From NCBI RefSeq assembly GCF_052425735.1, contig NC_135758.1:36394001-36458000 (forward strand): a stretch of 64,000 nt of DNA, in the 5' to 3' direction. Position 1 is the first letter of the stretch; each line of letters begins with the position of its first letter. The position numbers were made by a program, and so were the translations under genes. The DNA is from Oculina patagonica (Eukaryota). This document shows positions 38,801 to 61,733 of the stretch, piece by piece. A model generated the notes under the pieces. That model had not been told where the DNA came from. It made no database searches and saw only the letters and a list, made by a program, of their open reading frames with translations.

Positions 38801-40458
38801 ATTAATTATGTCGTTACAGTTTCGAGGTCAAAGCTTCATATTGAAGAATAGATAAAAATCGCGAAATTTAATACACTCCAATTGTACCTTCCTCTCAAAA
38901 TCGCGAAATTAAGAACTCGCGAAATATGGCTCTTGATTTTTCGCGAAATTAAGTACTCGCGAAATTAAGTGAGAATAAGGTATATAACCGGCTGCCAACG
39001 GCCCCCTAATTTAAGTAAACGACCTGAATTGCTCACTTGATTAATCTAGCACTGACATGCACTGACCAAAAGAGCTAAAAATATTTCTATAAGTTTGGAG
39101 TACCTGCTCGGTCTAAATAGTCCACACAGGTGTCCTTTTTGTAGCGAGCTGCAGCTTCTCGTGCTCTCTCACCATGTGCATTTTGTATCTGTAGATCTGC
39201 CCCATTTGTGACCAACACTCTTAGACAGTCAGGATGACCCCAGGATGCAGCTCTGTGCAAAGCTGTATAACCTGTAATAATCAGCCCTAGCATCAATATA
39301 CACGTTCTCCTTACTAGCCTTACTTACTTCTTAAAGTGTCAGGTAAGAGAATTTGAACATATATCAAGATGACTTCCTTGGTGCTTTAGACAACAACAAC
39401 ATCAAGGTTTATTTGACATGCATTTAGTGTCAGTAGTTCTTGTCACCTGAATGAAACTGAAGGCTGGTTTTCATATTACTTTGGAAAAACCACTAACAGT
39501 CTAGAATTTTGTTGTTTAAGTATTTTGATGTTCAATCCAGAATTTTGGCGTTTGAACATCTGGGGCCATCAGGAAACTATATATACCATACTGGACTGTA
39601 TTGGATTTTCCAAACTTTAAAAACCTGGCCTTAGTATTGAAAGCAAACCTTCCAAGATACCCCAGTCCCAGGGTCGCCCACTACCTCTCGGAACGAGTTT
39701 CTTCAATGGTTCTTAAAACAATGGATAACTTAGTTCTTAATGCCCCCAGGTGGGGGATAGGGCCCGAGCCTGTAGATAACAGATCAAAACAATAGGTCCC
39801 CTAGCCCTAGAAAACAATAGAGGTAGTGTTACAATGGGCAAATAAAAATAGAGGTTCCAGAGAGGTAGTGCCTTACTGCAGTCCCACCATGGAACACTTG
39901 GCTATGATCAACCACTAACATTTAAGTTGTGGTACTCTCACTGCAAACAAGCATGACAAGGCAGTTGACTTTCTCTGATTGGTTCCTATATTTGTGTGTT
40001 TTAGCAAATCTCCAGGTTCAGTCTTGATACCTCGGTTTGTTTAGAAAAATCTCTAGATTTCCAGTTGTACTGATTGGCAGGTAAATGCTGGTAAATGGGA
40101 AAGTGTAAAACAGGGGAGCTATGATCCCAACCTTCTTATTGAAACAACAAAAGGTTGGAGCTATTATAGAACAGAGAATAAAAACCCCTTTCTTCTTCGC
40201 CATGGTATATTCGTGATATAGGCTAAAAATACCTTTCTTAGTCTGACTGTTGATTTCTGCTCCGCGTTCTAGAAGCTCTCGAACAATCTCTTTGCGTCCC
40301 AACATGGCTGCTATATCCAGGGCTGACTTGCCATCTTTGTCTCGTTTGTTCAATGCCTGAGCTGGATCAGTGGAATATATACTCTCTGGGTCCTCGAAAA
40401 GCTCTTTAAGTCTTTCAATATCCCCCTTCATTGCAATTTCAATCAATTCTTTGACCAT
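35871..40458 (-). CDS. ANKRD45: Ankyrin repeat protein, ANKRD45-like, about 216 aa
   Basis: Exons 40233-40458, 39104-39271, 38163-38257, 37644-37785, plus tentative 36523-36538 and 35871-35874. Ankyrin repeats (GKSALDIAAMLG, GYTALHRAASWG) followed by ERAREAAARY..CVDYLDRA..DPEKHLGRFTREDK..KNDWLESH..QKQELEELLKPILSKL, matching my recollection of ANKRD45. The last two exons are less certain. Confidence 0.82.
36764..36994. mobile_element. MITE with 6-bp TSD
   Basis: TIR GAGGCCCTGCCAGGG / CCCTGGCAGGGCCTC; GCTTAT on both flanks; partial copy starting at about 10165. Confidence 0.75.
38398..38980. mobile_element. Tc1/mariner-type MITE
   Basis: TIR CCTTATTCTCACTTAATTTCGCGAGTA; TA TSD; TCGCGAAA subrepeats. 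Confidence 0.85.
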
Positions 40459-42363: not shown

Positions 42364-45300
42364 TCAAAGCCTCGCTGTTTCTGTGTTATTTATGAGTCTT
42401 TCAATATCTTCCACCTCCTTTGGGCATTCATCAGTAAGAACTTCGGGTCCACTCTCTGTGATCAAAACATCATCCTCGATTCGTATGCCTATCCCTCGAT
42501 ACCTGTAAACGAACACAGAATTACACCTTCACTGGCCAAGGTTTTTGTTATATATATAACAACATTTGCTTTTCCTAAAGCAAAACAAAAAGCACACCTT
42601 AGCCGCTATACAATTCACATTTTGACTGCAGCTAGGCTATTGACACTCAGACTGGGAGAAACAAACAGGCACCTCAAGGCCAAAGTGACCCACAATCCGT
42701 GCCATGATTCCTTGGGACACTCATTTCAACAATTATAACGTGACATTCCGTTGCGAATTCTCAGAAATGGAGAACCCCCCTTCCCCAAAACCAATGTTTC
42801 AAAATAGACGGAAACGGAGGGCATTGTTTTTTTTTTTCAAGGTACACAACATTGAATGGGCCAGGGGGGGGGGGGGGGGGGTATTTGTTGATTTTTTTCC
42901 TGTTTTAAGTGTAAAAAACGGCGTGTCCTAAGAATTGCGGCGTGGAATGTAGTTTAATTAAATCGCCAATGCTGCAACTTCTTGGCTAATTGGAAGCCGG
43001 CCACCAAAAGAGAATGGTTCTGGCGGTCAAAACGCATCCGTTTGAAAGAATAGAATTAAAATGTTACACGGGACAACTTGCAACAACGATTTTTCGCGCA
43101 AAACCGCGTCAACTTTTCGTGATATGTTAAACGAGTCAACTTTTCGCGCAACATCGTACGAAATGAACTTGGCAACATGCATGTTATACGAGACGATTTT
43201 TAGCGCAACGCCAACTCGCAACATTTCGCGCGCGCATCCAGGCCATGTTGAACAGAACTCTGGGAAGGTGTTGCGCGAAAAATCGACGGCGACCCTGTTA
43301 CACGAGTCAACTTTCTAAATATTCGTCATCTTGCGTTGCGAGTTTTTGACTTGGGTTCAAAAACTCGCAACGTGTTGCCGAGTCAAAAGTTGCGCGAAAA
43401 ATCGTCCCCGGTACCATGTTACACGGTGAACGATTTTTCGCGCAACATTGTTGCGCGAAAAATCGTTGTTGCAAGTTGTCCCGTGTAACACCACCTTTAA
43501 GGAGATGGATGGGCCCTTCGCAGCTTATGGTCACATGGTTCAAAATCCTCCATGTTGGAGGGAATGTCCGCTCTGGTACATTCAAAACAAAGGAAAGTCA
43601 AGTCATGACTGGTTGAAGTCGCTTTGTTTTCGATGTCCCAGCGCGTAGCCTGTCCTCAAGCAAGGTGTTGTTTTGTACCATGTGACCATTAGCTGCAGAG
43701 GTCCCATTGCAAACCTTTCCGGTACGTTTTTGTTGTCCTCAGAGATGTAGATACCAGGCTCCACCGTGATCACCATACCCGGATGTAGCCCCAGACCTCT
43801 GCTCACCAAGTGCGTGTCATGCGTGTCCATACCGAGATAGTGACCCACGTGATGAGGACAGAATTCACCAGCAGCCTGAAAGCCACAAAGGTAAAGACAA
43901 CTGTCAGTGACGAACTACTGAAGCAAGCAGAGTAATCAACATAGAGACAGCATCCGCAAAGCCACAGAAGCGTTTTTAATTTCTAAAGGGAAAACACTTG
44001 AACCCTATAGCATGAATAGACGGGATGAAACTTGATATATTATGTTTGTCACATGTATGCTATTTCTATCTTCTACCGTTATTTGTTTTGTTTTCTTATT
44101 ATCAGCCTATCACGTACCAGTTTTTCATCTTAGTTTATTTAAATTTTGTTACCGTTTGTTTCCATACTCACTTAGCATTGTATGCCCCTGATGAAGGTTG
44201 GTTTTGTTCAACCGAAATATTGGGCCAAAATAAGTTTAAAACATCAGTCCCTAGCTGTTTGATCAGCCCTGCATTTAAAGTTTGTAGAGTAATCAACAGC
44301 TAGTTTTCCCTTTACGGTATTACTATAATTCAAGCGTAATGAAATTGAGGAAAATCAACTATTACGTCCATCTTGTCCAATGTTGACCATCATGTCCTGG
44401 CTAGGTGGAGGCTAGATTGGTATGGGGTGGGGTGGGGTGGGGTGGGGTGGGATGGGGTGGCGTGCGTGGAGGGATTGACTGCTACGTGTCAACTATATAC
44501 AATTTAGATGGGTGGGGTCGGTGTATACACCAGATTGAAGAAACGTTGACCCTGTGAAATGCATGAGATGAGACCGAGTTCATATTAGAGAGTTTCTTTG
44601 AATCACGCGACTTCTCAAATGCCGCTGATAGCTGTGCTTTTCAAGCAAAATAGCAGTTAAACTTGAACTTGGTTTAAAAGCTCCTTTAATTTTTGCCGAA
44701 ATCAATTTATGCCATTCAAGTGCCGGTTCAAGTGTATTTTATCTAAGATTCGGAACAAAATAAATATTTGCAAGCCTAGGCCGGAATCTGTTTATGCATG
44801 TGGATCAGGATGACGTCATGAAGTAAAGGGGAATTTTTGCTCACTGCGACAGTTGACGCAAACTTCCTGACTCGTGCAAACCTCGGACGATGCTAAACGG
44901 AGAAATAGAATGGGAAATAGAATGAAAAGAAAGAAATAGAATGGAAAATGGAATGAAAATAAAGAAATAGAATGGGAAATAGAATGAAAAGAAAGAAATA
45001 GAATGGGCTCGAGTCTACTCGTTTATTTAGCGTGAAATGTTTTTTTATTTTTTTATTCAAGATTCGGAACAAAATAAATATTTGCAAGTGTGAACAAAAT
45101 TTATCCAGGCATGTGGAGTATAGCTAGAGATAACGTTATGAGGGATCTCACGCACAGCGTGACTCACGCAAACCTCAGACTTGTGTGTAACTCAAGTGGC
45201 GTGACTGTTTGAACTGAATAGCTCCTTGTTAAGTTTGATGACTGTTTACATCATTAAACAATATTTTGAGTCACAGGATATGACACAATGCTTCCTATAG

Positions 45301-48300
45301 CATCAAGAAATTGGTAGTAACAACCTAAGCCTTGACATGCACAATAGGCCAATAGGACGATCTTTGCTGACGTCGTTGTTTACATTTTGCCTCATTTGCA
45401 TACGACTTTGCAAAGAGAAGGCATCCTGCTATATACATATTAACTTCAGAAGTTTAAAGAGCTTGTGAAACTTAACAATCGGCAAAATTTTCAGCTCTTA
45501 ACTTTACGTGTAATATTGAAGGAGATATAGATATTAGCTTTGAAACGCTGCAAAATTTCTGGGTGGCAAAAGCGCAAGTCAAGTCTCAAATTGACTTCAG
45601 TTGATTGACGCTTTCACCGTTTCTTTCCTTTCCCCTGCTATAATAAATTGTTTGTGAACAAAACTAAACTTTTTCTGTTCTGCTGTTTACATAACACCGA
45701 ACAATTATGTACTTGATTAATAAATTTGTGATTTGCTGAATGATACAAAAGATCTCCAAAAAAGTCACAATGTAATTTATATTCTGCGGTTTTCACGAGT
45801 AATATAAGCTGCGTTGCAACGTAAAAATGGGCGCTGATGGAGATAACGAAATCTGATTCAGTCGACAAAGCGCGCGAAATCGTGAAAAAAGGCACGCGAT
45901 GAAAAATCGCGAAAAAAGGCATGCGATGAAAAATCGTGAAAAGGGGCACGCGATATAGATCGTGAAAAAAGGCACGCGACAACGTTTCAGCTATAACTCG
46001 TGATCAATCTTAATGAACTTCCGACGTTCGAAGTTACCGTAACCACATTACGAAAGGAAGAAAGCCGTCGATAGAGTTAACTATGGCAGCATTTTCTTTC
46101 GCAACTTTCTTCAAACACACGGCACTGGTTGCCCTGATTGCTTTCTTGTTTGTTGCTGTAAGCGATGGGTGTACTTTCAAGAGTGACTGCGAAGAGAACC
46201 AAGTCTGCTGCAACTACGGATGCGTTGATGGATCAAACTGTATCGGTCACGGCTGTGTGACTGATTCTGGTTGTTATATCGGGGAAAGTTGCTGTTATGG
46301 TAAATGTGTTGACGGATCAAGATGCTGTTCGTCGGATTCCGATTGTTCTAGCTGGGAGACTTGTTGTAGCCATTCATGCGTTGTCGCTTCAAGTTGTTTC
46401 GGTCGTTACTGTTCGTCGGATTCAGATTGTTCTGGCTCTGAAAGTTGTTGTAGCAGCGTATGTATAGATGAGCTCGATTGCTCGGGGTATTCTTGTTCCA
46501 AAGACTCTGATTGTGGAAACAAGGCCAAACACTGCTGTGACGGACAATGCTCGAATAAAGGTTGTCACGATACTGCCGCCACCATTGGTATCATTATTGG
46601 TGTAATATGCTTGATTTCCATGTGTATAGTCGCCATTGGCCGTTGCCTGAGATCAGGACAGAGAGGAACAGCAACTACTGTCCCCACCACTGGTGCAATA
46701 CAGAGCAACCCACCCCACCAGGGACAGGTTCCACCGTCCGATAGCTACCAACAAGGCTACCCACACCATCCCCCACAGCAGCAACACACGACCAACCTTC
46801 CACCACACAACCCTGAGGTAACGACAGCGAGTGAACAGCCTCCCCCTTACACTGCAGCACCACAGGGAGTATCAGGGGGAGTTTATGCACCTAAACCTTC
46901 TTATGGTGCTATACCATTAGCAAGACCTGTCTAACAACGACACTGGTAAAGTGAAGGGATTCTACCCGTGCAGGAGCCTGACCCTTGCCAGGAACTTTTA
47001 CAGAAAACAAACTGTGAGAAAGGAAGTGGTGTAAAAGCCACATTGATGTTTTTAATGTTCACCAGCCAGCCTTTAAAATAACCGGTTTTGAACACAAGTG
47101 GATTTCATAGACTTTAGAGCGATTAATAGTTTTACGGAGAGGAGTCACTTTTCATTAATACAGTGAAATATTGTCACTCGAAAAAGTTTTTGATTACAGT
47201 ACTTTTTTAGCATTTTCCCGTTACTTGGCTAAGCGGAAATTAAAGCAAGTTAGTCTTACTCTAGGAAGCAAAGAAGTCAAATGCCATCGTACCGTTTCAG
47301 TATGGCTCTTTACCTATAACGTTTTGTAAACAGAAACCAAATAAAACTTATCCCTATTTGGCAATGACTAAAAACCCTTAAACCTCGATTGCTTCTATGT
47401 AAACCCGTTAGAGCAGTTTTCAATGAGTGTCGTAAAACCAAAAGTTATCACTCTGGCCAATCCTATAGGACAGACAATCAAATTAACCAATCAAGTCTCA
47501 AGGTAAATACACGTATACGTCGGAAAGCGCGGGAAAACGTGTGCGAGCGCGTCAAGATTGGTTTTACTTAATTCTGGTTGGATGAAAAAGTGGCGCGAGT
47601 TTTTTAATCCAATCACTAGGCAAAGTAATGCAAAATCAAAGCAAATGCGAATTACTTTCGACAATCAAGTGAAAACCGCCTAAAAACGTTGAAATTGGAA
47701 GCCTTTCTAGGTTATCAAGTCCAATAGGCCTCTCTAAAGACCTCATTAAAAAGCCACATACGTTCAGTCATCCTATAATGTATCCGCAGGTTACTAATGT
47801 TGTGTGTAAATACCTTTTTGAGTTGACTTTCGGTCAAGTTCTTCGGGACAAAATTGATGTCTGTTAAAATAAAGAGGAAAAAGATAATTCTAAAATGAAG
47901 TAAATTAGGTCAATGTGGTTGTTTAGTTAAGCAGGGAGCAGGGATGGCGCAGTGGTGAGAGCGCTCGCCTCCCACCAATGTGGCCCGGGTTCGATTCCGG
48001 CCCGGTTGCCATACGAGGGTTGTTGTTGGTTCTCGTCCTTGCTCCGAGGGTTTTTCTCCGGGTTCTCAGGTTTTCCTCCCTCCACAAAAACCAACACTCC
48101 AAATTCCAATTCGATCTTGGATGCACGGTACAGGTCTTAGCAAGCTCCTGAGCTTTTCTATGTTGTAACGTGGGTAAATAAATTTCATTTACAAATTACA
48201 TTTACTGGGCTTTAGAGCAGTTTTCAATTGAGTGTCGTAAAACCAAAACCAAAGTAATTACTCTGGCCAATCACAAAGGACACAGACAAACCAGTGAACC

Positions 48301-51300
48301 AATCATCAAAACTCCAAGCAAATACATGTAGCCGTCACGAAGCGCGGGAAAACGTGCGCAAGCGAGTCACGATTGGTTTTGGTTTTAGTTCTGATTGGCT
48401 GAGAACGTGGCGCGAGATTTTTAAGCCAATCACTGAGCGTAGTAATGCAAAACCAAAGCAAACGCAATTTACCTTATTATAGGAAATTAACGCTTGTGTA
48501 ATTAAGGTATTTGAAATTAACGCGACTTAAATTAACGCGAATTGAAGGAAAAGTTACTTCCCAATAAAGGAAATAACGCGAAAGAGGGGGGAACATTTCA
48601 AAATGAAGGATTAACGCGACGTACACAAAGGAACAAGTTTATTTCAATACTTGCAGGCTGTTATCTTAAACGAAAACAATGTTCTTCTCATTTGAGCGTT
48701 CTTTGCAGTATCAATGATAGTGGCAGATAAAATATGCTTTTTCCTTGGAGTCAAGAACGCTGGACTGTAATGAGAAATTGGGACCAAAATAATGGAAATT
48801 AACGTCATAGAAATTAACGCTCCACCTAATTAACGGTGCGAAAATTAACGTTAACAAAAATTAACGCGACTTAAATTAACGCGAATGTTTAAAATTCGCG
48901 TAAAATTTCATGACAAGTTAATTTCCTATAATAAGGTACTTTCGACACTCAAGTGAAAACCGCTCTATATCTTGTTCAATAAAACTCCTGTATCAGTAAG
49001 ACAAACAAATCAGGGAAGATAAGACCTTGTTTATCCAATCAAAATGAAAATCAAACCAGAGATAAATTGGTCATGCGCTTAGCACTGGCTTACAAAAAGG
49101 TGTAGTGATGGGCTGCATGTATGTTCACTTTCATTGTTTTTTGTTTTTCTTCATTCTCTGTCGAGCCTTGTCAGCATTACACTGCTGTTACACTCCAAAT
49201 CATGCCTTCAACTGTACCCTCAATACGAAGAAACATTTGTCAAGCAAGTTTCTTGAGTCAGCTTCTCAAGTTTCGTACCTACCAAACACCATCAGTTATG
49301 CACAAGTGACCAAATGCAAATAAACTAAACGCTCAAAACAAAATAGTTTACTCACTAATAAGTTCCTCTCCAAGGAGTAGTAGCATGGCATGATGAAGAT
49401 AGTCTAGTGACACCTCCTTTTGACAAAGCTGGCAACAAAGAAAGTCAAACATGAATGAATCAATGAACTTTAAATTAACGTGTCTAAAAGTATTCAGCAG
49501 ATGGAGAACTCTCTGCTTAAAGGGGACACACCTAACTAAGAGCAAAAAAACTTTGACGCTAATGTACATAGTTATAACAATACATCTATTTACAGCATCA
49601 TAAAATTTAATAATTACATAGGTGGAAGTCCTTATATCAGTCTTTTAGAAAGCTTGATTGACCAGGCCTTCTTATTTGCATTTTAAACTAAGCCTTTAGA
49701 TTGCTCGCAAGTCTCTGCACTAAGCAACATTTTTCTATTTAGACAAGCCTTACTAGCCTTAAGTGAAAGTGTTTAAAGAAAGAGAAGGAGCTCACTTTTA
49801 AGCATTTTTTGTGTACTCTTAGCACCAGTTCGTAGAGTTCCCTCTGTGGGTCACTAAATTTACCACTGACTGGCCACGTCCTGGTGATATCGCTGGCGTA
49901 GCCGTGGTACTCACATCCAGCATCCATAAGGACCAGCTCCCCATCTCTGAAGAAAACAGCAAGGACATTGGGTAGCAAAATGAACACCTGTCCTGAATAG
50001 AACTATTTTTACATGACTGTAATTTGGCCCTTTAAGGAGGCAGCGTGGTCGAGTGGTTAGAGTGCTGGACTCGAAAACCGAAGGTCGCGGGTTAGAGTCC
50101 CGTTCTGACCACTAGCTGGTGTTTTCTTTAACAACAATTACCTTAGAAGTTGTGTGTTGTTTATGTAGTGAAGGGTGTTAGCCATGGGTCCACTAGCCAC
50201 TACAGGAGGGTAAGCAAGTCTCTCAGCCCCACCCATTCGACACTCATATTCCAAGATAGTATGAAGATGAGACTCCTCCAGCCCTGGACGAGTGCTTTTC
50301 ATAACCTTTGAATCATAAATAGGTTTCATGGTTAGATAAAACAAAATGTTTTGAAGTAGGAGTCAGCAGTAGGCGGCTGTGACAAGCCAAGCTTGTTTGT
50401 TGTGAATTGTTTCTTTGACCAGAGTAACCGGCAACATAATATTATCATCAAGTAGCTGGTGGAACTCTGGTAGTCGCCGGCTTGCTTTGAAAACCCTGAG
50501 CACAATAATTATTATGAACACATTGAGATCAACATTTCAAGGTGGTAGAAGAATGCATTTACAGATCAAGTAATAAGAAAGATAATAGTCCGATTCAAAC
50601 TGGTATTTACACACTTGTGCAAAATTTTAAACAGTACATTAATTCGGATCAAGCTTGATGCTGCAGTCATGACCAAGTCCTGACTGATGACGACGCCACA
50701 GCAGTGAGCGAGACACTTTTAATTACTCTTACAGTGTTCCTAACCACCCAGGCCTTTTTTTTTCTGCCTGGATTGAGTTAGAAGCGAAACAAGTAACAAA
50801 AGTAAGTGGCACTGCAAAAGGTGAAGGCACAAGTGGACTGGTTGAAAATTTAAAACTTAAGCTATCATCAAAACTCAAGCAGAGTCCAATGTGTCTGCTC
50901 TTATACATGTAGGCCATATAAAACAATGACAGAAATAAATCTCACCTTAGTAATAGCTCTGGATGCCAGTGAAGCTGATTCTCTAAGTAATTTAATTTCT
51001 GCATCAGATTTAATAAGTCTAAGCATGTGAATGTTGTGGCCAAGAACCAGCAAATCTGAAAAGAAATGCAGAGCATAATCTATTGTTTTAATATTGTGCT
51101 CTTATGTAGAGCTGCTATTGACCCAAATTTTTTGTGGATTCACTGTAGTCTTCAGATAGTAAGGGGCTATCAAATGATAGAAAAAGATAAAGCAAGAAAA
51201 CCTGGCCATACCTTCTTTACCAAAAGAACAGATTGGAAAGTAATTGGAAAAAGAGTAAGAGGTGCACTTACTTTTGTAACTAAACTTCTCTGTGTGGAAC

Positions 51301-54300
51301 AGAACCTTGGAGATTTCATCATGGATGGTTGGGTGGGTAGGACGAAGGGAATCATACCACACACAGAAGTCTTTGCCAGCATACCTGGTTTAATTGCACA
51401 AAAGACTTGATTAAATACTTCTAACCTATTGAAAACTGTTAGCATCCAACTGACCCCTTAGGGCATGGGCGTGGCCTGGTAGCAATAGTAAAAGTGGCTC
51501 ACAGGTAAGAGCATAAACTTGTGTCTTACTTTCTTATTTTACATTTTGGCTTCACAGGATTTTGAATCAAGTTGAGTGCAGGATGCTTGGGTCCACAACA
51601 TGCTTTGACCGAAAGAATTTTAAGTTTGTTCTTGGCAACCAAAACGTAATTAATTTTTTGCTGCACCTCATACAATATTCATTGTAAAAGGTGGGTGCAG
51701 CTATCCATTTTACATGGAACTTCAAGTCCAATACATACATCAAAATTAATGTATCCTTGGAGAAGACTGAATTGCAGCTCACTCACATCTTCGAAATGAG
51801 CCACAGCAGCATTGAACGAAATATGTTTTTAAGTTAAAAAGTCATAATAAAGCAACATTTAGCCCTGAAAAAGTTTTCTAGAGGTGGGCTTATATCCAGG
51901 GGGGCTTATAACCAGATGTATTTTTCTGTTTCCAGGTAGATGGGCCTATAACCAGGGGGGGGGGGGGGGGGCTTATAAGCAGAGGGGCTTATAACCAGAA
52001 TTTTACAGTATATTTTAATAGGAGAAATGACAATTAAGGCTTAGATGAAGCAACATACCTGTCAATAAGTACTGATGCTAGATTTCGAATTGAATATGAC
52101 TAGAAAAAAAAAAGAAGATTTAAAGAAAAAGTTTGGTCAAACTATTTCCACTGTGACTTAAACAAATACAATTTACACTGAAACTTGCTATGGTGGTTAA
52201 TTTACCTTTATCATATTTATAAGTTCATAATAATCAACTATGTGTTTCACTCGCCCACAGACATAGCACAACAGTTTATTTAATGACATCAGTAACATGC
52301 TAATCTAATGGCAAAAGTAAAGTTTAAAAATGTTTATAACAAAGTGGAATCACTAATTACAGGTATAACTTACCTCATCAAATCCAAAGTGAAGAATGGC
52401 ATCTTTAGTTCCAGGTCGTTTACCTTCCCACAGCACCCTTTGAACAAGAGAAATCATACTTATTTTCAGAATGGAAAGAACTGGAAGACCAATGAGGCTC
52501 AGTACTAGTGCATAACCATGCAACATTGAACATGACCTGAAGCCCGTGGCATTGAATTTATGGTAAAAGCAAAATTTCTGTTCAGGGAAACTGTCGGTAA
52601 CCCTGTCAGCTGACAGTTGACAAACAGTCAGTGAACGGGAGCTGTTACTCACAATTACTGAATTTATGAAAGAAACCACTGTATTGCACATTTAAATTAG
52701 AATAAATTATTGTAATCCATAGATCTGAACATACATTATTGATTTCAATATTTATTTATTTTGTTACAATTATGTGAAAACACTTACTTTTTAGGATCAT
52801 GTGGTTGGATAAAGAGAGTACTTTTGTGAGCTGGCAAGGGCAGACCTTCTACAGATTCTGCACAGCAAAAATAAGAATTACACTTAACATTAAATCAGCA
52901 CTTGCTTCTCAAAGAAGCATGATTACAATTTTCTAGAATTCTTGAATCAACTCATTCATTTGTTATAGACCTCTGACATGCAGGAGGTATTCATAAAGTA
53001 TTCATGGATATATACATCCACAGGAAAAATATACAGTTTCTTTTCTTGGTAGACTATGATATGTGTTTCCTATAGCCATATGGCCCTGTAAGCTGTTAAG
53101 AGAGCTGTGGTAAAGTTATAACCGAACAACGAAAATGAGAGAAGATGTGTTGAGATAAATTTAACACAAAATATGCTTTACTACTTAATACATAAATAGA
53201 ATTTGATGGCACTTACGCAAAACTAAAACAGCATCTGGTTGTTGAAAACCAGTAAGGTACAGAAAATCTGTGTTTTGTCTGAATGGATATCTGTAGTGAA
53301 AAGCAGAGCAAACTGGCTTGTGAATGTTCAGGCTCATTCTGAAGATAGGAGTAAAAGGATGGCTGGCGGGTAAAGCAGTCCAAGAAAGAATTATCCCTGG
53401 AGAAAGCCTGTTCGCAGTCTAGCTCAACTTAATATTTATTACAATACTAGAAATTATTTGAATATACAGCTAAACAGCTTCGAGCACAAATTAACAAAAA
53501 GTTGAATGGATACTTACGGCACATCTTTTGTCATGTATTTTGTAGGATTGCTTGGAATGATCACCAAATGTTTGTCGTGAGTTTCACCAAAATGTGTCTT
53601 GGCCAGTAGACTGCAGGTTAAAAAAAAATTAAGAAAATAATTCAATTCCAAAACGAGAGCATTCTAAATTGAAAGTTCTCTCAATTCCAAAACATCTTAT
53701 AGTTTTTAAAGAATTTTAAGAATGTAACTAAGACCTTAGAAGCATTTGTCTTCTGTCTCTATATTCCTTCTTAGTAATTCCAGGAGTGACTGCAAAGAAA
53801 TAAACATCAAGTTTTAAAATATTAAAAAAAAAAAAAAAGATATTGTAATGGGAGTTAGGAGCTTGTTAAGGCTCTCCTCTTCAGCAAAGATGTAGCTAAG
53901 AAAACACTAAGACGGCTCAGCTGGCTTTTCTGGCCTTAGCAGCTCTAAAAGTTTGCCTAAGTCTCTGCTTTCATGTTAAATTTCAGCCAGATTTAAGTTC
54001 TATTTCAGCCGGTCCTTAGCAACGTCCCTGCTTCAGGATTAAATACCCTAGAGAATAAGGGTAAAGGAAATGCTCTGAATCCTAAGCAAAGATTGAAGTG
54101 CCTCATAGGTATTTGAGAGTAACGAAGCAGTCAAAAGTTGCTAACAAATGACAAAAAACATTTATGTGCAAAGTAACATTAAAATAGAAAAAATACACTA
54201 AGTCTATAATTAATTTTAATACGCAATAACCATAATTACCAATTAAATTAACAATGAAATTTCAAGGAACGAATTGACAAGATAATTAAAATCACTTTGC

Positions 54301-57300
54301 AGTTAAACAAGTCTGCACTATGATTGGACAGACCGCTTGATCCGGAGTCCGGTGCACTAACCATTAGGCCAGAGCACCTCCCTCTCAATAATATTACAGT
54401 AGGACACTGGTAACCTGAACTCGGATAACTTGAACAACCCCGCTAACTTGAACTAACTTCTATTTCCCTTGGAACCACTTTTTAGTCATTTACTCTGTTA
54501 ACTCGAAAACCCCGCTAACTCAAACTGTTTTTTGTTTCCCTTCAGAGTTTGAGTTACTGGGGTTCAACTTTATACCTCAGTTTTCTTGAACTTCTTGATT
54601 TCTCAAGCCAATATCTATTTTCCTTGAAGGCTTGAGAAATCAGTATTCTATTTCAACTATAAGTTGATCAAGTGTATACTCCACACAACTAAATCAAAGT
54701 AATTCAGAAAATTTATACCAAAACTACTATCAGGTGTTCCTCTCCTTGGTCGTCTTGGAGTCGGATACAAGTCAGGAGCTGAAGGTCGTAACAGTTCCAT
54801 CATCATAACACCTTCATTCTCTGTTGTGTAACCAGCTTGTTCTAAAATGACTGGTTCTTCCAAATGAATCATTTCACTAGTAATTGTGTTCCTCTTGAAC
54901 AGTGGCATCTTATTAAGTCCAGGAAAGTATGAAATTGCCAGAAATATTACAACCAAAGCACATGTTAAAATTGCCAAAGATGAAATCCTTCGAAGAGTAA
55001 AATTCCACATGATGGCAATTGCTGACTTGAAACTAGCTACAACTGAGTACTGTGGAACATCTTCCCTTATCCATTAACATTTTGTTCAGAAAAAAAGGAA
55101 AAGTCCACAAAAAATTGTTCCCTCTTTGCAATGTGTTTTTTTTTAAACTTGAGATCATGAAAAACCAAGAATTCAATTCATCTTTCCTTAAGTAATTTGT
55201 TCCATGTGCTTTTCTTGGGACAAAAAAGAAAAACAATTCCCATGATTCCTTGTTCCATTGTTCCTTCCTGACCAATAACAACACAAGGCACCTGTACCAC
55301 CAGCAGTGTCAGCAAGTAACAGTTTTGTGGATCTCTACAAAAGTAATTAATTCCTTAACTCTCTAAAATATTTTGCAGTTATTCAAGTAGGTAGAACATG
55401 GAAATAAAATACTGGACCACTCAATGAATTAATATCTGAACTATCTTCTTAAAAGATAATTTGATAAAAATATGAAAATTATTGCAAGATTGAAGAAGAA
55501 AATTTTGTTTAAGCTGATCATCATTTCTAACTTTTGCATTTCATCACTGTATCAACATTGATATTAAAATGAAATACAATCATGTTATTCTTTTTATTAT
55601 CACATCTTTTAATGGTAGTATGTTAATGAATCTATTTATATAAAATCTATAAATTGCAACTGATTGACATTCAAACCCTGCTTTACTTGCTACAAATACC
55701 TGTAACCACAAGATGTTAACACAAACAAAAAAAAAACTGTTTCAATCTATTTCTAGCAAAACTGACACGCATTATTCTTAAGAGCAAATTTCTCTGTATT
55801 TATCTCATTTATAATTTAAAATTCCTCATGAAAATAAGTATCAGATTATCTTTTCAAAGTGAAAAAAGTATATTCAAATAATAATTTAATATATTTTTTT
55901 GAAAAAAATTACCCAACATTTTTGGTAAAATAAATTACCACCTGCTCATTTTAACAAGTTAACAGGAAAGATTTAAATATTTAATTTACACTGAGTAATT
56001 CACAAGCCATTTGACTCTCAATATATGGAATTTTATTACAAATTTATAGTAATAATTACTGCTATAAAGAATTAATAAATTTTACAAGTGACCAACATTT
56101 AGTCTTTATGCACATCAAGTGCTAATAATATTATTCTTTCCATCAATTTTTGGCTTGAAAAAAATCTATTTTTAAGCAAATCATTGACAACTGTACATTC
56201 TTTCTACTATTTCTCCCAACATGACATAATAAATCTATGTGTTCTGTGTTTTTTTTTTTTAATATCTTACTAATTTTTCATGTACTAAATGGTTGATACA
56301 AGTTAGAACCCTTCTGGACAGAAAGAATCCAATCCAAATTCTGCTGCAGAGTTTTTTTTTTCATGGAAGGGATTTCTTCTTTAGATCATAACAGTGCTCG
56401 ACACTAACGCTAGTACACTAGCCAAGGACTAGTAAAACTTCATGCTTGGCTAGTGAAAGTACGCTTCTACTAGCCCCTAGACTAGTTGGCTTCGTGGACA
56501 AATAAATTAACTACAACTCTATAACTTGGGAAGTATTTCTCCTAGAAACCATCATCAGGATCTAGTTTCCATAGCTTGAGCAATTTAAAACCAGAGGGCT
56601 TTCGATCCATCTCGTATCGTATGGGTTTTACGATTGACTCGCAAATGCAAACCTGACGCCATCTTGGAAAAGGCTCTCCGTCCTCGCTTCCATGTCACTC
56701 ACAAGGGACCTGGGTGAGAGCCAACAAAGGTCCACCATCTTGGATGTTTTCGCGCGAGCAGTCACTGTGTCACCGCAAGCATGAAGGAGATTTCAAGCTT
56801 TTTGCAACGACCTCCAAGGGCCGATAATCCTGATCCAGATTGTTCACCAAAGGACCACACACATCATGAAGAGAAAAAGAAGTGCGATCAGCGGTCAAGA
56901 AATTTTCAACCGAGTTGGAAGAAAGCATATCCGTTGCTGCGATTCAATGGAGGACTCTGAGAGTTTAGCTGAGGGATAAGCTGATGAAGCTGATTCAAAC
57001 TCGGTTTTCTAATTTTATTTGTTTTTGGGAGGGGGGTGGCTAGTGACTTGTCCTTTTGGGCTAGTGATTATTTGAACTTACTAGCCCATGGCCTAGTATC
57101 AAAAAAAGTTAGTGTCAAGCACTGCATAAATTAACAAGTATACATGAAAAACTCATGTTCAGAGTAAAATGGTACATGTACAATAGAGTTGCTGCAAAAC
57201 AGTCATATATTTTCAAACTAACTTGCACGGTCTTTAAACTAAAGGTTTGAAGCAAGTGTTAAAGCTGATTTCCAGTCCGTACTGCGCAGACTCGGGGTTT

Positions 57301-59902
57301 GTTTTCGTTTTTGTTTTGAATTCGTTGAAACGTTACACTTCGGTGACAGCATACATGAAGTTTTTTAGTCCGCCATTACAGTTCGTTTCGTTCAAGGATT
57401 TCCGATGAGCTGAAAGGTCGGTTTGAAATAGCGTCAAGGTTCTTCTACTCGTTATTATTTGTTCTGCAAGGATATCTGGCGTTAATAATGAAGAAAAAGG
57501 TAAGTTTGTCGCGGAAATTTAAGTTTTGCTTGTAAACATTCCTTCGTGGTGGGCTCAAATAAACATTGCAGCCGAGATTGCGCAGTACGGACTGAAATTC
57601 ATCTTTAAAACAGAGACTGAGGTATTTTAAATTTGTCATATTTTGTAATCCCACTTTTCTGCATGAAAATACAAATTGATTTCCTCTCCAGAAATTGTCT
57701 TGAATTACCACAACAAGATTTTTGTTCAGTATAACAAGTGAGTTGGTACCAGGGGCATGCCTCCCCAAATAATGTAATTTTCTCCAAATGATTCCCATTT
57801 GGTGAGGAGCTTTTATTAGTTGTGACCTTCAGGAATGGAGCAAAGACTTCAAAGCTATTATATAAAAAAATCTCGATGATTTGGTAAGTGCAGAATGCAA
57901 TATGGAACAATTGAAAGTATGTTGTTTTATATATGTTCGTGTTTATTTGCTTTATTTTACTTTCGGAAAAACTGTTCACAGGCTACTTGTATTCTTTCCC
58001 AGGTGTTCCTTACGCTAATCTTTGCAAACGTAACACGACACTTTTGTTCGTTTGTAACAAAATACTTTTGTCTTCCTTGAAAATGCGATAACATGAAACT
58101 TTTGTTTTTTGTTTGTTTTACGGCGGCATCGATGACATTTGTTTAATTTAATTAAGTTACGGTTTAGACTGCACGAAAGACGATTCTCAAAAACTAAAGA
58201 AACAAATCTAATCAAAAAACATATTTTTCGACAGGTTTTTTAAAACGTAGTACAGCTAGGATATTTGTTTCCTGGTTATCAGGTGTTCACGCCGAAAATC
58301 CCGGTGCAAGTTTTTGCATACCTAATTACGAAAGCGCCGTGAAAGTCTCAAAATCTAATTTAATTAATTTGCGGTTTTTACTTGGCGCCAAGAAGTCTGC
58401 AGGAAGCCTACCGCAAACACGCAATACAAGCGATGTTCATGATAGTTCCAGAAAACAACGTAGACTAATCTGCGCATGCGTTTGGTGTAAATTACGTTGA
58501 GTAGTACCACAAGGAGAGCAAAGGGTTTTCTGAAACAAATATATACGTTTGAGATCTTCATATGAAAGTAACGTAGATGTGCTCCAGGTTTTACCTAGGG
58601 GTACGGTCAGGTGCTCCCCACCCCCACCCCCTCCACAAGGAATAATTAATTAATTGATATTAATTAATTAATTGGCGATTAAAAGTTTACACCGCGTTAG
58701 CGGTCTAGGGGTTTAGCAACCGCCAACCCACCAAACCATCACAATAGTGCATTCTGCACTAAAAATCAATATCTTCAAACATGACGACACCTACTTTCGT
58801 CTTCCTCCATGAGGTGAGGGTGTGATTCTGGTGTTGGTTGTCCGATAGTCTTTGACTTGTCGCCAACAAACCTGAGGCCTCTTTCACTGAGGGATTTTAA
58901 ATTTTCTACAAAAAATAATGAGATTGGAATATAGTATGGACCTTTCTTTGAGTTAGTCATGCAGGTGTGATAATTCGCCAAAGCATAAATAATAGCAGGA
59001 AGTAACCTCATTCCCAGGATCTCACAGACTTCTTCCTTTTTTCCTGGAAACAAGGGATGAGAAGAGGAGGCCCCCATTCTCTTCCCTCTCCTAACCTCAT
59101 TATTATAACTTATTCCAAACCTCTTCCTTGCTCTCTGACATTTAATACCACAGCCCATCTAATAGCCACTGTTATCAATGTCAGCCCACTCCCTCCCCCT
59201 TGGTCTGAAGGAACTCAAAGTCATTTCTGAACTTAGGAGTTGCGCTGTTGGCATCTTTTGATCAGAAGGAGTTTGAAAAAAGTGACTTTTTTCTTAAGGG
59301 AGTAAAGAGACATTGGGTAGGAACTGAGTGGCTTCTTGTGGAGGAGGAAGGAATTTTTGTTGACTATAGGATGGTGTGGAAATAAAATGGAATAGCCCCT
59401 ATTGTTTTTGTTTGCCTTGGCAACCTCTGAGAATTTGTTTCATAATGGTGATGCATCTGTTGTAGCTGAAAATGTTTTTGAGGTCAAAATGATTTACAAG
59501 GTAAACTTTGTTTGATTCATATTTTAAGGATAATTTTTGGTAATAAATCTGGAACAAAGGATCATTGAAATCAAACTTAAGTTTGAAATCATTTTGACCT
59601 GAAAGTCATTTTCATCCACAACAACTCCCGTTATAGCGGACACGCTCGGGGTGCCGTTTGGTGTCCGTAATAGCGAGAGTCCGTAATAGCGGGAGTCATT
59701 TCCAGTCAAACCTCTTTCCCTGGGGATCTGGATTTTGTCCGTAATAGCGAGTGTCCGTAATAGCGGGGTGTCCGCAAGGCGAGAGTTGACTCCACTAACA
59801 GATCTTGATGAAGTGTGGAAAGTGGATGGAGGACAATAGCCAAAGTTGGGGGATATTGAATTCCCATTCGGGCCGCCAGGTGGGGGCACTCCCATTTATG
59901 AT

Positions 59903-59944
<42 letters not shown>

Positions 59945-61733
59945 AGTTAAGTCTGAGATAGGGTATAGAAATCAGAAAGTTTTGGTCTAGAAAAGGGTAG
60001 CATTTGCCGGGAAACTGATCGGTGGTATGACAAATTAAGTCCAGAGTAGGAATAGAAACTCAGAAGAGAAAGAGGCTTTCCTAAACGTAAATTAAATCAT
60101 TGCAGCATCGTTGTTGACAGATGGTTTTCCATTAATACACTGATAATGATACAGTTCTAAATGATACAAGTCTGGGATAGGGTAGGGAATTTCGGTGTCT
60201 AGTCTAATATTGGGTTGCAAAATACGCTGAACATGGTCTGGTATAGGGTATAAGGGTTTCAAATTCCCAGCGGCTCACCCCCACCCAAAAATATACAGGG
60301 TGCCCCCCCCCCCCCGTTCGGGTCCCCACCTATTTCACCTTTTTACCCTGGGATCTCTCCTTGTCTGCCACTGCCATTATGGACCATTATGCACAGTGGC
60401 ATTCATTAGGCTCAATGGGCGATTCCAGAAAATATCCGTACCATACCACGGACGGCTTTTTGGAAATCCGAGGGCAAGGGGGGGTTCATTGAACTGGAAT
60501 TCCGAAGGCATGGGGGGATACTTACGATTGGAAATTCCAAAGGCATGGGGAGTTCCAGGTCTTGGATTTCCAGAGGAGAAAACAAGAGTGTGATCCTTGA
60601 AAATGCTTATTTTTGTGGACTACCAAGTCGCAAATAAAGCCCGAACTGACGACCGCGTAGCGGAAGCAGGATACAAGACAAGTATCGATCGATCAGGCAT
60701 GTGTTTGCGTTCATTTACAAAAGAAAATCGCTAAAATGTGGGTTCTACATCAATCTTCAGATGCCTTAACATTGATGAACTGCTTCATTCGCTCTTTGTT
60801 TTCTTGTCAAAGCGGATCCACAAATATTAAGTCCATTAATTCAGTGGGAAACTCTTTTGCTACGCTTCGAGACGCCATTTTAAAGCATGTGGGTTGGGAG
60901 CAACTGCTGACCGTGAAGGCTCAAATCCAAGATGGCGGATACGTCAGTGCACTCGATCGTATTATCTTCCGCGTTTACACACGTGCATCACACGATATTC
61001 TTATTTTAATGTTCTGCACCAGTTTAGGGCAATGTAAAATTAATGTAGGTTGTATCTGTTGAACAAGGGTAAGGAGAAAAGTCTTATTTTTTTTACATTT
61101 TCATCCCAGAATTTCTTGAGTCATAATGACTGTCGCTATGTACAGATCGAGTCATTTGAAATAATTTGATGTAAAATACGCCACATTGGGCGTATTTGCG
61201 AACCCTGACGGGAATTCTAAAGAGCTTGACTAAAAAATGAAAAATCTGAACGGGAGGGGGGGTTAATGATTATGGAATTCCGAGGGCATGGGGGGATAAC
61301 GCATTTTGGAATTTCCGAAGGCAAGGGGGGCTAAAATATGGAAGCCGTCCGTGGTATGGTACGGATATTTTCTGGAATCGCCCAATTACAAAAAGAGATC
61401 TCAAGGTATATGAAGAACTTGTACGATGAGATAAAGTAAGTTTTTACCTTCATTGGAACACGGTTGTACTCCAGCAATGCCGCTCAGGGTGCTTTCTGTT
61501 CGCATCCGAGATGTTGACCAACATGCGGCGAGAGGTGGCCGACTTTTCCATCTCGTAAACTTTGTTCCATGGATGTACCTAATACGAACTATTAGAATAT
61601 TAGCTTAAAATCAACACAAAACAATTCTCCCTGTCATACTTCTTTCAAACTCACCAAATGTCCGTGAATTCGTCTTCAAAACAAGAGTTAGTTTTGGTAT
61701 TCGCGCAGCAAAGTGTTTCACCTCAGCCGCCAT
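42364..61733 (-). CDS. XPNPEP3: Xaa-Pro aminopeptidase 3 (Icp55-like, M24B), 16 exons, about 514 aa
   Basis: Exons: 61655-61733, 58795-58905, 53735-53789, 53518-53610, 53217-53290, 52788-52857, 52374-52437, 52059-52099, 51272-51384, 50946-51055, 50142-50305, 49796-49946, 49356-49428, 47814-47860, 43715-43875, 42364-42502; all in phase. Motifs [82 protein letters not shown]. The basic N-terminus resembles a mitochondrial presequence. Confidence 0.93.
43062..43497. mobile_element. MITE with long TIRs; a second MITE lies next to it at about 43509-43708
   Basis: Inverted TGTTACACGGGACAACTTGCAACAACGATTTTTCGCGCAA; the second element has ATGGG.CC....GCAGCT.ATGGTCACATGGT inverted ends. Confidence 0.75.
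43942..44285 (+). mobile_element. 5'-truncated Penelope-like element (GIY-YIG C-terminus plus 3' region)
   Basis: Frame reads [30 protein letters not shown]; contains a hammerhead motif; 13-bp TSD AGAGTAATCAACA at 43929-43941 and 44286-44298. Confidence 0.85.
44184..44225 (+). ncRNA. Minimal type I hammerhead ribozyme
   Basis: GCCC-CTGATGA-A-GGTTG(gttttgtt)CAACC-GAAA-TA-TT-GGGC: helix I GCCC/GGGC, intact core, helix II, and palindromic AATATT in place of helix III. Confidence 0.8.
44895..45006. repeat. Purine-rich minisatellite, variants of AAATAGAATGG
   Basis: Direct tandem units visible. Confidence 0.75.
45871..45980. repeat. About four 27-28-bp tandem repeats upstream of the nested gene
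   Basis: ATCGTGAAAAAAGGCACGCGATGAAAA units. Confidence 0.8.
46083..46934 (+). CDS. Nested intronless type I membrane protein: signal peptide, Cys-rich repeats, TM helix, Pro-rich PPPY tail (Shisa/CYYR1/WBP1-like architecture)
   Basis: 283-aa ORF with a hydrophobic signal ([15 protein letters not shown]), five C-x-x-D/K-S-D/G-C...CC...C repeats, [22 protein letters not shown], and EQPPPYT. It lies antisense within XPNPEP3 intron 43876-47813. Confidence 0.85.
   Translation: MAAFSFATFFKHTALVALIAFLFVAVSDGCTFKSDCEENQVCCNYGCVDGSNCIGHGCVTDSGCYIGESCCYGKCVDGSRCCSSDSDCSSWETCCSHSCVVASSCFGRYCSSDSDCSGSESCCSSVCIDELDCSGYSCSKDSDCGNKAKHCCDGQCSNKGCHDTAATIGIIIGVICLISMCIVAIGRCLRSGQRGTATTVPTTGAIQSNPPHQGQVPPSDSYQQGYPHHPPQQQHTTNLPPHNPEVTTASEQPPPYTAAPQGVSGGVYAPKPSYGAIPLARPV
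47934..48205 (+). mobile_element. tRNA-derived SINE, copy 2
   Basis: GGCGCAGTGGTGAGAGC / GGTTCGATTCC boxes, V-like core and an (ATTTAC)-like tail. Confidence 0.85.
48213..48967. mobile_element. MITE interrupted by a Tc1/mariner-type MITE (48472-48936)
   Basis: Outer TIR TAGAGC.GTTTTCA.TTGAGTGTCG, with an uninterrupted copy at 47409-47682; inner TIR CCTTATTATAGGAAATTAAC with TA TSD. Confidence 0.85.
50036..50120 (+). mobile_element. tRNA-like SINE head fragment
   Basis: GTGGTCGAGTGGTTAGAGTGCTGGACT...GGTTAGAGTCC; degenerate B box, no proper acceptor stem. Confidence 0.6.
54719..55010 (-). CDS. Candidate alternative first coding exon of XPNPEP3 encoding a type II signal anchor and stem
   Basis: [35 protein letters not shown]-stem...TPDSSF ends at a G|GTATAA donor in phase 1, matching the phase-1 acceptor of exon 53735-53789. 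Confidence 0.5.
56392..57124. mobile_element. hAT-like MITE with 5-bp TSD
   Basis: TIR CAGTGCTCGACACTAAC / GTTAGTGTCAAGCACTG; TSD CATAA; subterminal CTAG repeats. Confidence 0.8.
57272..57594. mobile_element. MITE
   Basis: TIR CAGTCCGTACTGCGCA..CTCGG; TSD unclear. Confidence 0.65.
59878..60315. mobile_element. Non-autonomous element, copy 2 of the 487-915 family
   Basis: Colinear similarity with 487-915. Confidence 0.6.
60417..61383. mobile_element. 967-bp MITE with 42-bp TIR
   Basis: TIR GGGCGATTCCAGAAAATATCCGTACCATACCACGGACGGCTT; AAT on both flanks. Confidence 0.88.

Follow-up and report, generated by a model that had tools for sequence, protein, structure and literature searches.

A conserved alternative first exon in an XPNPEP3-type aminopeptidase P gene of Oculina patagonica replaces the presequence-like N-terminus with a putative anchor and stem

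XPNPEP3/Icp55 is treated as a mitochondrial enzyme that trims imported proteins, with an additional cytosolic form in human. We analysed a 64,000-nt stretch of the genome of the coral Oculina patagonica (RefSeq assembly GCF_052425735.1, contig NC_135758.1, positions 36,394,001 to 36,458,000; hereafter the window, by whose numbering all coordinates are given), which carries a gene of this class on its minus strand. This one gene possesses a real and conserved alternative first exon, which replaces the 64-residue presequence-like N-terminus with a 97-residue module made up of a hydrophobic segment and a stem. Transcripts appear to start within intron 2, at approximately 55175-55611; their first exon ends at 54719 and joins exon 3 at 53789. 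From the features of the encoded peptide, we consider a secretory destination for the resulting isoform, either as a lumenal type II protein or as a prepro form shed by a convertase, to be probable at roughly 0.58.

The coding part of the alternative first exon occupies 54719..55010 on the minus strand and measures 292 nt, that is 97 codons plus one base, ending in phase 1. An earlier reading made from the sequence only had noticed an ATG-started open reading frame (ORF) in XPNPEP3 intron 2 on the strand of the gene, and its location, with the ATG at 55010 inside a 5005-nt intron, was confirmed. The ATG opens a frame of 117 residues reaching 54657, whereas the spliced product leaves it at the donor G/GTATAA (the slash marks the exon edge), which follows TTT at 54713..54719 with its GT at 54718-54717 and the exon's final base at 54719. 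At 53789, the acceptor ttgcag/TCACTCCT provides the TC that completes the junction codon G+TC for Val; ttgcag/TCACTCCTGG lies 929 nt past the donor and opens the coding part of exon 3, (V) plus 18 residues. The intron of the alternative transcript (53790..54718, minus strand, 929 nt) is the 3' portion of canonical intron 2, with transcribed repeats inside it. The 97-residue peptide has one match place in the 529-Mb assembly, and a Pfam scan of it returned no family. Because 16% of shuffles of the 5-kb intron 2 contained an ATG-started ORF of at least 97 residues, the length of the ORF by itself is not significant.

Evidence for transcription was drawn from cDNA-like runs, picked as those in which all sampled exon words were present along with only about a quarter of the surrounding 1.4-kb stretch; four of these (X2, X3, X4 and X12) were aligned to positions 53100-59000. 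Contigs were spliced at 53290/53518, 53610/53735 and 53789/58795, and the presence of these canonical joints identifies the material as cDNA. The alternative joint, 53789/54719, was observed in contigs of two runs from separate studies, X3 and X12. The 929 nt that it skips are bounded by CT..AC on the plus strand, equivalent to GT..AG on the gene strand. Both the phase-1 G/GT donor predicted after 292 nt and the junction by which the prediction was to be checked were thus found in use. The alternative joint had a contig depth of 19.5 with a 30-nt anchor in X3 and of 7.4 with a 20-nt anchor in X12, while the canonical joint 58795/53789 in X3 had a depth of 59.8 with a 30-nt anchor, placing the alternative form at about a third of the canonical one as a rough figure. 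Anchors of 30 nt arise from k=31 graphs where an exon is shared. Since depth over the non-repeat parts of the intron was zero in X3, the signal of the exon is not a background of pre-mRNA. In X2, a 732-nt contig ends precisely at 54719. The donor GTATAA had been flagged as weak in the sequence-only reading and was graded weak here as well; the joint is used in contigs.

The same contigs indicated that the exon has no splice partner on its 5' side. Among the contigs of the four runs, no splice joint into the exon from upstream was seen, including one from exon 2. Contigs extend 165-600 nt upstream without a joint, although contigs as such cannot show the 5' ends of RNA. The acceptor that had been suggested near 55290 is not used, as evidenced by contigs of X2 (54719-55452), X4 (54594-55355) and X12 (55159-55611) that run through it unbroken. 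Given this unbroken coverage and the unused acceptor, we regard it as a first exon that probably has a transcription start to itself. Its 5' leader (55011..55611, minus strand) is covered by joint-free contigs to at least 55175 in X3, 55355 in X4, 55452 in X2 and 55611 in X12. Of the 16 upstream ATGs found over 600 nt, four fall in the minimal leader of 165 nt, and all of their frames close before the main ATG. A possible TATA box, TATAAATA (55633..55640, minus strand), precedes the outermost contig end, at 55611, by about 29 nt; in such AT-rich DNA, TATAAATA is a weak candidate and at most suggestive.

We then asked how far the exon is conserved, using a HMMER pass over 1.84 billion representatives (E ≤0.001) and related loci taken from ENA/Logan, including a metagenome scaffold from Tara Pacific. 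The HMMER pass gave nine matches, eight of which are short ORF calls with 42-91% identity; the ninth, P0009, is a protein of 734 residues (E=5e-5) in which seven stretches cover only residues 57-83 of the peptide. A profile search over 90% clusters gave 37 matching protein clusters. The short ORF-call homologues all lose similarity directly after F-G, which is the position of the G/GTA donor. In the five foreign loci long enough for gene order to be followed (L003, L006, L008, L010 and L011), exon 2, the alternative exon, exon 3 and exon 4 stand in this order on one strand, and in the four of these with both intron ends on the locus (L003, L006, L008 and L011) the intron between the alternative exon and exon 3 measures 288-1258 nt. 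In each of the nine foreign loci the ATG is preceded by a purine at position -3 (GCCACC ATG in L008), and each has a TTT G/GTA donor, an ag/T[CT]AC acceptor and phase 1; the junction codon is Val throughout. The check for conservation in related species that accompanied the sequence-only reading therefore came out in its favour, with ATG, donor and phase kept in nine foreign loci and the order in five.

Further comparison revealed that conservation follows the coding frame. Pairwise dN/dS values (ratios of nonsynonymous to synonymous substitution rates, dN and dS, by the Nei-Gojobori method) were 0.25-0.62 at dS 0.5-1.9, with zero stops and with insertions and deletions (indels) in threes only, demonstrating that the coding sequence of the alternative exon is under purifying selection. 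The coding part is 83% identical to that of L008 and 75% identical to that of L006 at the nucleotide level, without gaps in either case, and identity falls to 42% and 50%, respectively, in the first 300 nt past the donor, the flanking intron not being alignable. Upstream of the ATG, the corresponding values are 75% and 55% over the first 300 nt and 49% for both loci at 301-600 nt. Similarly, the X4 contig has 1-3 differences from the window in the 292-nt coding part, whereas the 125 nt that follow the donor show at least 10 substitutions and three indels; in the X2 contig the listed differences are confined to the leader. The alternative exon evolves faster than its neighbours, with 40-79% amino acid identity against 79-94% for exons 2-4, as is expected of an anchor and stem. 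In one locus (L010, 3502-3791) it is split over two frames by a frameshift; that contig has 1x long-read coverage, which favours a sequencing error over a pseudo-exon.

These results dispose of several other accounts of the ORF. A chance ORF is ruled out by the splice joint, the synteny and the dN/dS values. A transposon, a retrocopy or the orphan N-terminus of another gene was rejected on account of the single genomic locus, the lack of a Pfam match and the position between XPNPEP3 exons 2 and 3 in relatives; a match of the peptide to the N-terminus of an unrelated gene, which had been named as the finding that would speak against the idea, was likewise not seen. A cassette exon with an acceptor near 55290 was discarded because contigs read through that point and the frame upstream of the ATG closes after 21 codons. 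As for an origin by duplication of exon 2, the two exons share nothing but PTP, placed about equally far from the junction, and this is no evidence.

The peptide encoded by the exon begins with an N-terminal tail of 7-9 residues ending in LR[RK] among homologues. This is followed by a hydrophobic segment of 21 residues (codons 9-29, 54924..54986, minus strand), which is preceded by the conserved R7 and R8 and whose best 19-residue window has a mean Kyte-Doolittle (KD) hydropathy of 2.59, compared with 2.2-2.9 in 21 homologues; a single segment of this kind would suffice to cross a membrane. AlphaFold2, run with a six-row alignment, predicted a helix at residues 2-28 with a predicted local distance difference test score (pLDDT) of 80-92, and gave residues 37-72 a pLDDT below 50. 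The spacer of about 55 residues is acidic, rich in Pro, Glu and Thr, variable and predicted to be disordered. Thereafter comes a C-terminal block of the form P-[DE]-x-x-PTP-R-R-x-[KR]-R-G-x-x-D-x-x-F. Columns that are invariant across the peptide are R7, L12, F23, F29, L73, P76, P79, P83-T-P-R-R87, R90, G91, D94 and F97. A small-x-small site follows the helix in most lineages, L003 being an exception, and would permit cleavage by signal peptidase. A feature search of the ESM Atlas gave as nearest entries N-terminal fragments of type II Golgi GalNAc-transferases (GalNAc-T1/T13) with a score of 0.85, which we take as a lead only.

The basic motif in the C-terminal block, RRPRRG at codons 86-91 (54738..54755, minus strand), corresponds to the pattern R-x-[KR]-R-G, lies seven residues before the splice junction and agrees with the consensus of furin and other proprotein convertases. 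The pattern is invariant in all full-length homologues, in the variants RRPRRG, RRARRG, RRSRRG, RRSKRG and TRPRRG, while positions P3, P5 and P2' vary; the motif sits in a low-pLDDT, non-helical region of the AlphaFold2 model. Because the T after the G is replaced by V or A while R-x-[KR]-R-G stays constant, a phosphorylation site is a weaker interpretation, and the motif would fit a convertase site better.

The host gene was assigned to the XPNPEP3/Icp55 class (M24B aminopeptidase P with AMP_N) by its domain content. Pfam AMP_N (PF05195) was found on exon 5 with E=4.4e-12, the strongest AMP_N match across the genome, and Peptidase_M24 (PF00557) was found on three downstream exons (E=1e-16 to 7e-8). 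The downstream exons also contain the metal-ligand motifs, including IRIEDD, which we take from knowledge of the family to supply the D, D, H, E and E metal ligands. Canonical exon 1 (61654..61732, minus strand) encodes 26 residues plus G, has a donor G/GTGAGT, matches L010 in tblastx and is in phase with exon 2, its splice to 58905 being inferred from phase and not from reads. Canonical exon 2 (58795..58905, minus strand; 37 residues plus A, donor A/GTAGGT) is joined to exon 3 in X3 by the joint 53789/58795 and is skipped in the alternative transcript; its amino acid identity to L003, L006, L010 and L011 is 79-94%, and a conserved GQPTPxSHPHL segment precedes (V/I)TPG. Together, exons 1 and 2 provide the canonical N-terminus of 64 residues, which is basic and presequence-like in composition.

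The exons from the third onward are shared by both transcripts. Exon 3 (53735..53789, minus strand) encodes (V/I) plus 18 residues, takes part in the joints 53789/54719, 53789/58795 and 53610/53735, starts the PepP-homologous core and shows 88% amino acid identity in L003, L006, L008 and L011. Exon 4 (53518..53610, minus strand) has its joints in contigs and is conserved in related loci, and exon 5 (53217..53290, minus strand), linked by the joint 53290/53518, carries the AMP_N core. About ten remaining exons (42364..53216, minus strand, with the stop at 42364) contain Peptidase_M24 and the metal ligands; they were traced by tblastx to L006 and by Pfam, and their boundaries are partly resolved. 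Since the junction falls where sequence similar to bacterial PepP begins, the whole enzyme, AMP_N plus Peptidase_M24, is kept in the alternative isoform. The protein of 548 residues with all catalytic motifs that had been predicted thus stands with regard to AMP_N, Peptidase_M24 and the motifs in the downstream exons, but not in its exact length: the exon chain gives approximately 545-560 residues, with a phase mismatch between exons 7 and 8 that probably reflects a missed micro-exon.

Based on these features, we propose that a promoter internal to intron 2 would give rise to a transcript with the alternative first exon, which is spliced in frame to exon 3. The hydrophobic segment of the product would then engage the signal recognition particle (SRP) and Sec61, either as an N-in signal anchor or as a long, cleaved signal peptide. 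With the dibasic pair retained in the cytosol, the catalytic domain would come to lie in the lumen of the endoplasmic reticulum (ER) and Golgi as a type II protein, and a furin-type convertase would cut behind R-x-[KR]-R, so that soluble aminopeptidase P with the N-terminus GTPDSSFVTPG reaches secretory compartments or the outside. A single gene would in this way supply both mitochondrial and secretory X-Pro aminopeptidases. The exon-switched membrane isoform put forward in the sequence-only reading thus holds in its structural half, through the contigs, the synteny, the donor and phase and the purifying selection, while its destination and substrates are matters that we infer; the Golgi or cell-surface location gains support from the combination of an invariant dibasic pair, a hydrophobic segment of 21 residues and R-x-[KR]-R-G at the boundary between stem and enzyme.

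A number of observations weigh against a secretory isoform and have to be set beside these features. The evidence for transcripts consists of assembled contigs with 20-30-nt anchors and not of raw reads, and the run type "RNA" was guessed; in X4, which has a different organism label, the contig passes the donor to 54594 and so displays the unspliced path only. The long leader rich in upstream ATGs argues for weak or regulated translation. The charge on the C-terminal flank of the helix ranges from -1 to +5; compared with that on the N-terminal flank, which is +2 in 18 of the 21 homologues (range +1 to +3), it is lower in 9/21, equal in 7/21 and higher in 5/21. Because the C-flank charge varies and in these five exceeds that of the N-flank, the positive-inside rule leaves the orientation undecided. 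In addition, a matrix-type enzyme may fail to fold or to find its metal in the secretory lumen, and a secretory aminopeptidase P could instead come from the three loci of the XPNPEP1/2 type (Peptidase_M24_C) that are present on other contigs of the same genome.

An alternative that we judge unlikely, but less so than the others, is that the protein is tethered to a membrane with its catalytic domain in the cytosol, through an N-out reverse signal anchor like that of microsomal P450 or through a mitochondrial outer-membrane anchor of the Tom20/Tom70/OM45 type. This would place the enzyme on the surface of an organelle, with the basic motif in some other role, for instance docking or regulation. 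Basic residues do flank the helix on both sides, with the C-flank the more positive in five of the 21 homologues; it is established for signal anchors that the N-terminus can be translocated when a short tail precedes a long segment of high hydrophobicity, and human XPNPEP3 also has a cytosolic splice form. However, it is the dibasic pair before the helix that is kept in almost all homologues and not the charge of the C-flank; KD values of 2.2-2.9 are above those of typical outer-membrane signal anchors, and an invariant R-x-[KR]-R-G amid variable neighbours resembles a lumenal convertase site. An isoform that is still mitochondrial, with its helix in the inner membrane or the enzyme facing the intermembrane space and with R-x-R-R-G acting as a mitochondrial peptidase site, would agree with the known biology of XPNPEP3/Icp55 and with the arginines at -2/-3 that are typical of sites for the mitochondrial processing peptidase. 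Against it, only eight residues precede the helix and none of them form an amphipathic presequence, a segment of such hydrophobicity at the N-terminus would be expected to be captured by SRP, and the exon replaces the presequence exons instead of adding to them, all of which makes this account very improbable.

At least as improbable, in our estimation, is that the transcript is spliced but its ORF is translated little or not at all, as a by-product of a regulatory or noisy intronic promoter. Such an account would draw on the leader with its many upstream ATGs, on an ORF length within reach of chance and on the weak donor; yet the frame, the ATG context, the phase and the donor are kept across lineages at dS up to saturation, dN/dS stays at 0.25-0.62, no indel breaks the frame, and conservation drops sharply at the end of the exon. 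The depth of the alternative-junction contig in X3, at its rough third of the canonical one, also speaks against mere noise. Returning to the secretory isoform, we would extend it only tentatively to the proposal that stony-coral-type anthozoans have long kept a second promoter and exon that yield a convertase-released, secretory XPNPEP3 acting on secreted X-Pro substrates. Among such substrates, precursors of neuropeptides and toxins, mucus proteins and skeletal-matrix proteins are possible candidates, and X-Pro N-termini are frequent in cnidarian peptide precursors.

Comparison with known systems places the isoform as follows. The gene resembles XPNPEP3 (APP3) and yeast Icp55 of the M24B group in having AMP_N plus Peptidase_M24, the five metal-ligand motifs and a basic canonical N-terminus. 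The known forms of XPNPEP3 are located in the mitochondrial matrix, and the human cytosolic splice form simply lacks the presequence, whereas the coral exon puts a putative hydrophobic anchor in its place, together with a stem and a predicted dibasic cleavage site. XPNPEP2, the membrane-bound aminopeptidase P, would be the functional analogue as an X-Pro aminopeptidase on the extracellular or lumenal side. It is a Creatinase_N/Peptidase_M24_C protein with a cleaved signal peptide and a C-terminal glycosylphosphatidylinositol (GPI) anchor; the coral gene, in contrast, has AMP_N and a putative N-terminal anchor without the Creatinase_N/Peptidase_M24_C architecture and is a different paralogue. 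Type II Golgi enzymes released by shedding at the stem, such as the polypeptide GalNAc-transferases, share the layout: a short tail of basic character leads into a helix of some 20 residues, and a disordered stem rich in Pro, Thr and Glu connects this to a globular catalytic domain. There is no sequence homology to them, however, and their catalytic domain is unrelated; Golgi residence or shedding would apply here by analogy.

The mechanism is like that of other targeting switches by alternative first exons, in which two promoters and two first exons serve a shared body with two destinations. Usually the switch is between mitochondrial and cytosolic or nuclear locations, and we know of no described case in which a presequence-trimming peptidase exchanges its matrix presequence for an ER-type signal anchor. 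Prepro-proteins of cnidarians (toxins, minicollagens and precursors of neuropeptides) consist of a signal sequence, an acidic propart whose last residues form a dibasic site, and the mature protein, an order that the alternative exon and the enzyme behind it follow; in comparison, the propart is longer here and the hydrophobic segment is long enough to remain as an anchor. A search of the full-text literature found neither a membrane-bound or secreted XPNPEP3 nor an aminopeptidase P in coral secretomes, although automated coral annotations may already contain the isoform.

Several other features of the locus were recorded. Four segments of intron 2 (57237-57630, 57828-58812, 53888-54084 and 54282-54675) reached contig depths in the hundreds and up to more than 20,000 in each of the four cDNA-like runs and must therefore be transcribed repeats with copies elsewhere in the genome; within the last of them, 54350-54420 looks tRNA-derived, though ARAGORN calls no tRNA there. 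One X2 contig begins 161 nt upstream of exon 3 (53790-53950, minus strand) and continues spliced into exon 4, representing either intron retention or a third start before exon 3. At intron 3, X12 has a variant joint, 53612/53741, with non-canonical GC..GA ends and an insertion of the four letters TAAG. Close by, this contig departs from the window at several positions, and the variant is probably an allelic or population difference and not a new splice form. Just 3' of exon 1, the block 61455-61580 (minus strand) is conserved with L010 by tblastx on both strands (38% over 45 residues). It is out of the frame from exon 1 to exon 2; an unrecognised exon is one possibility, a conserved element with a regulatory role another.

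Farther downstream, an XPNPEP3 intron holds an intact ORF of 283 residues on the opposite strand (46083-46934, plus strand), which looks like a nested single-exon gene. The predicted product starts with a signal-like sequence and contains numerous Cys-rich repeats, which match WAP weakly (PF00095, E=1.8e-4); a hydrophobic segment is also present, as is a Pro/Gln-rich tail. The neighbourhood of XPNPEP3 shows conserved synteny: an ankyrin-repeat gene lies downstream of XPNPEP3 in the window (40018-40458, minus strand) and in L006 (10828-11757, plus strand), and an ADAM10-like (Reprolysin) gene stands head-to-head upstream of XPNPEP3 in two relatives (L003 768-6291 and L011 3820-4980, both minus strand). 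On contig C4 of genome G000, two AMP_N matches 11 kb apart (332279-332413 and 343167-343304), each with an in-frame stop inside it, may be tandem prolidase-like genes or artefacts of exon edges.

If the secretory assignment is true, the catalytic module of XPNPEP3 would also serve the secretory pathway of corals, which would thereby have a new processing enzyme for X-Pro N-termini, and the gene would provide an unusually clear example of how a protein is re-addressed from one organelle to another by the swap of an exon.

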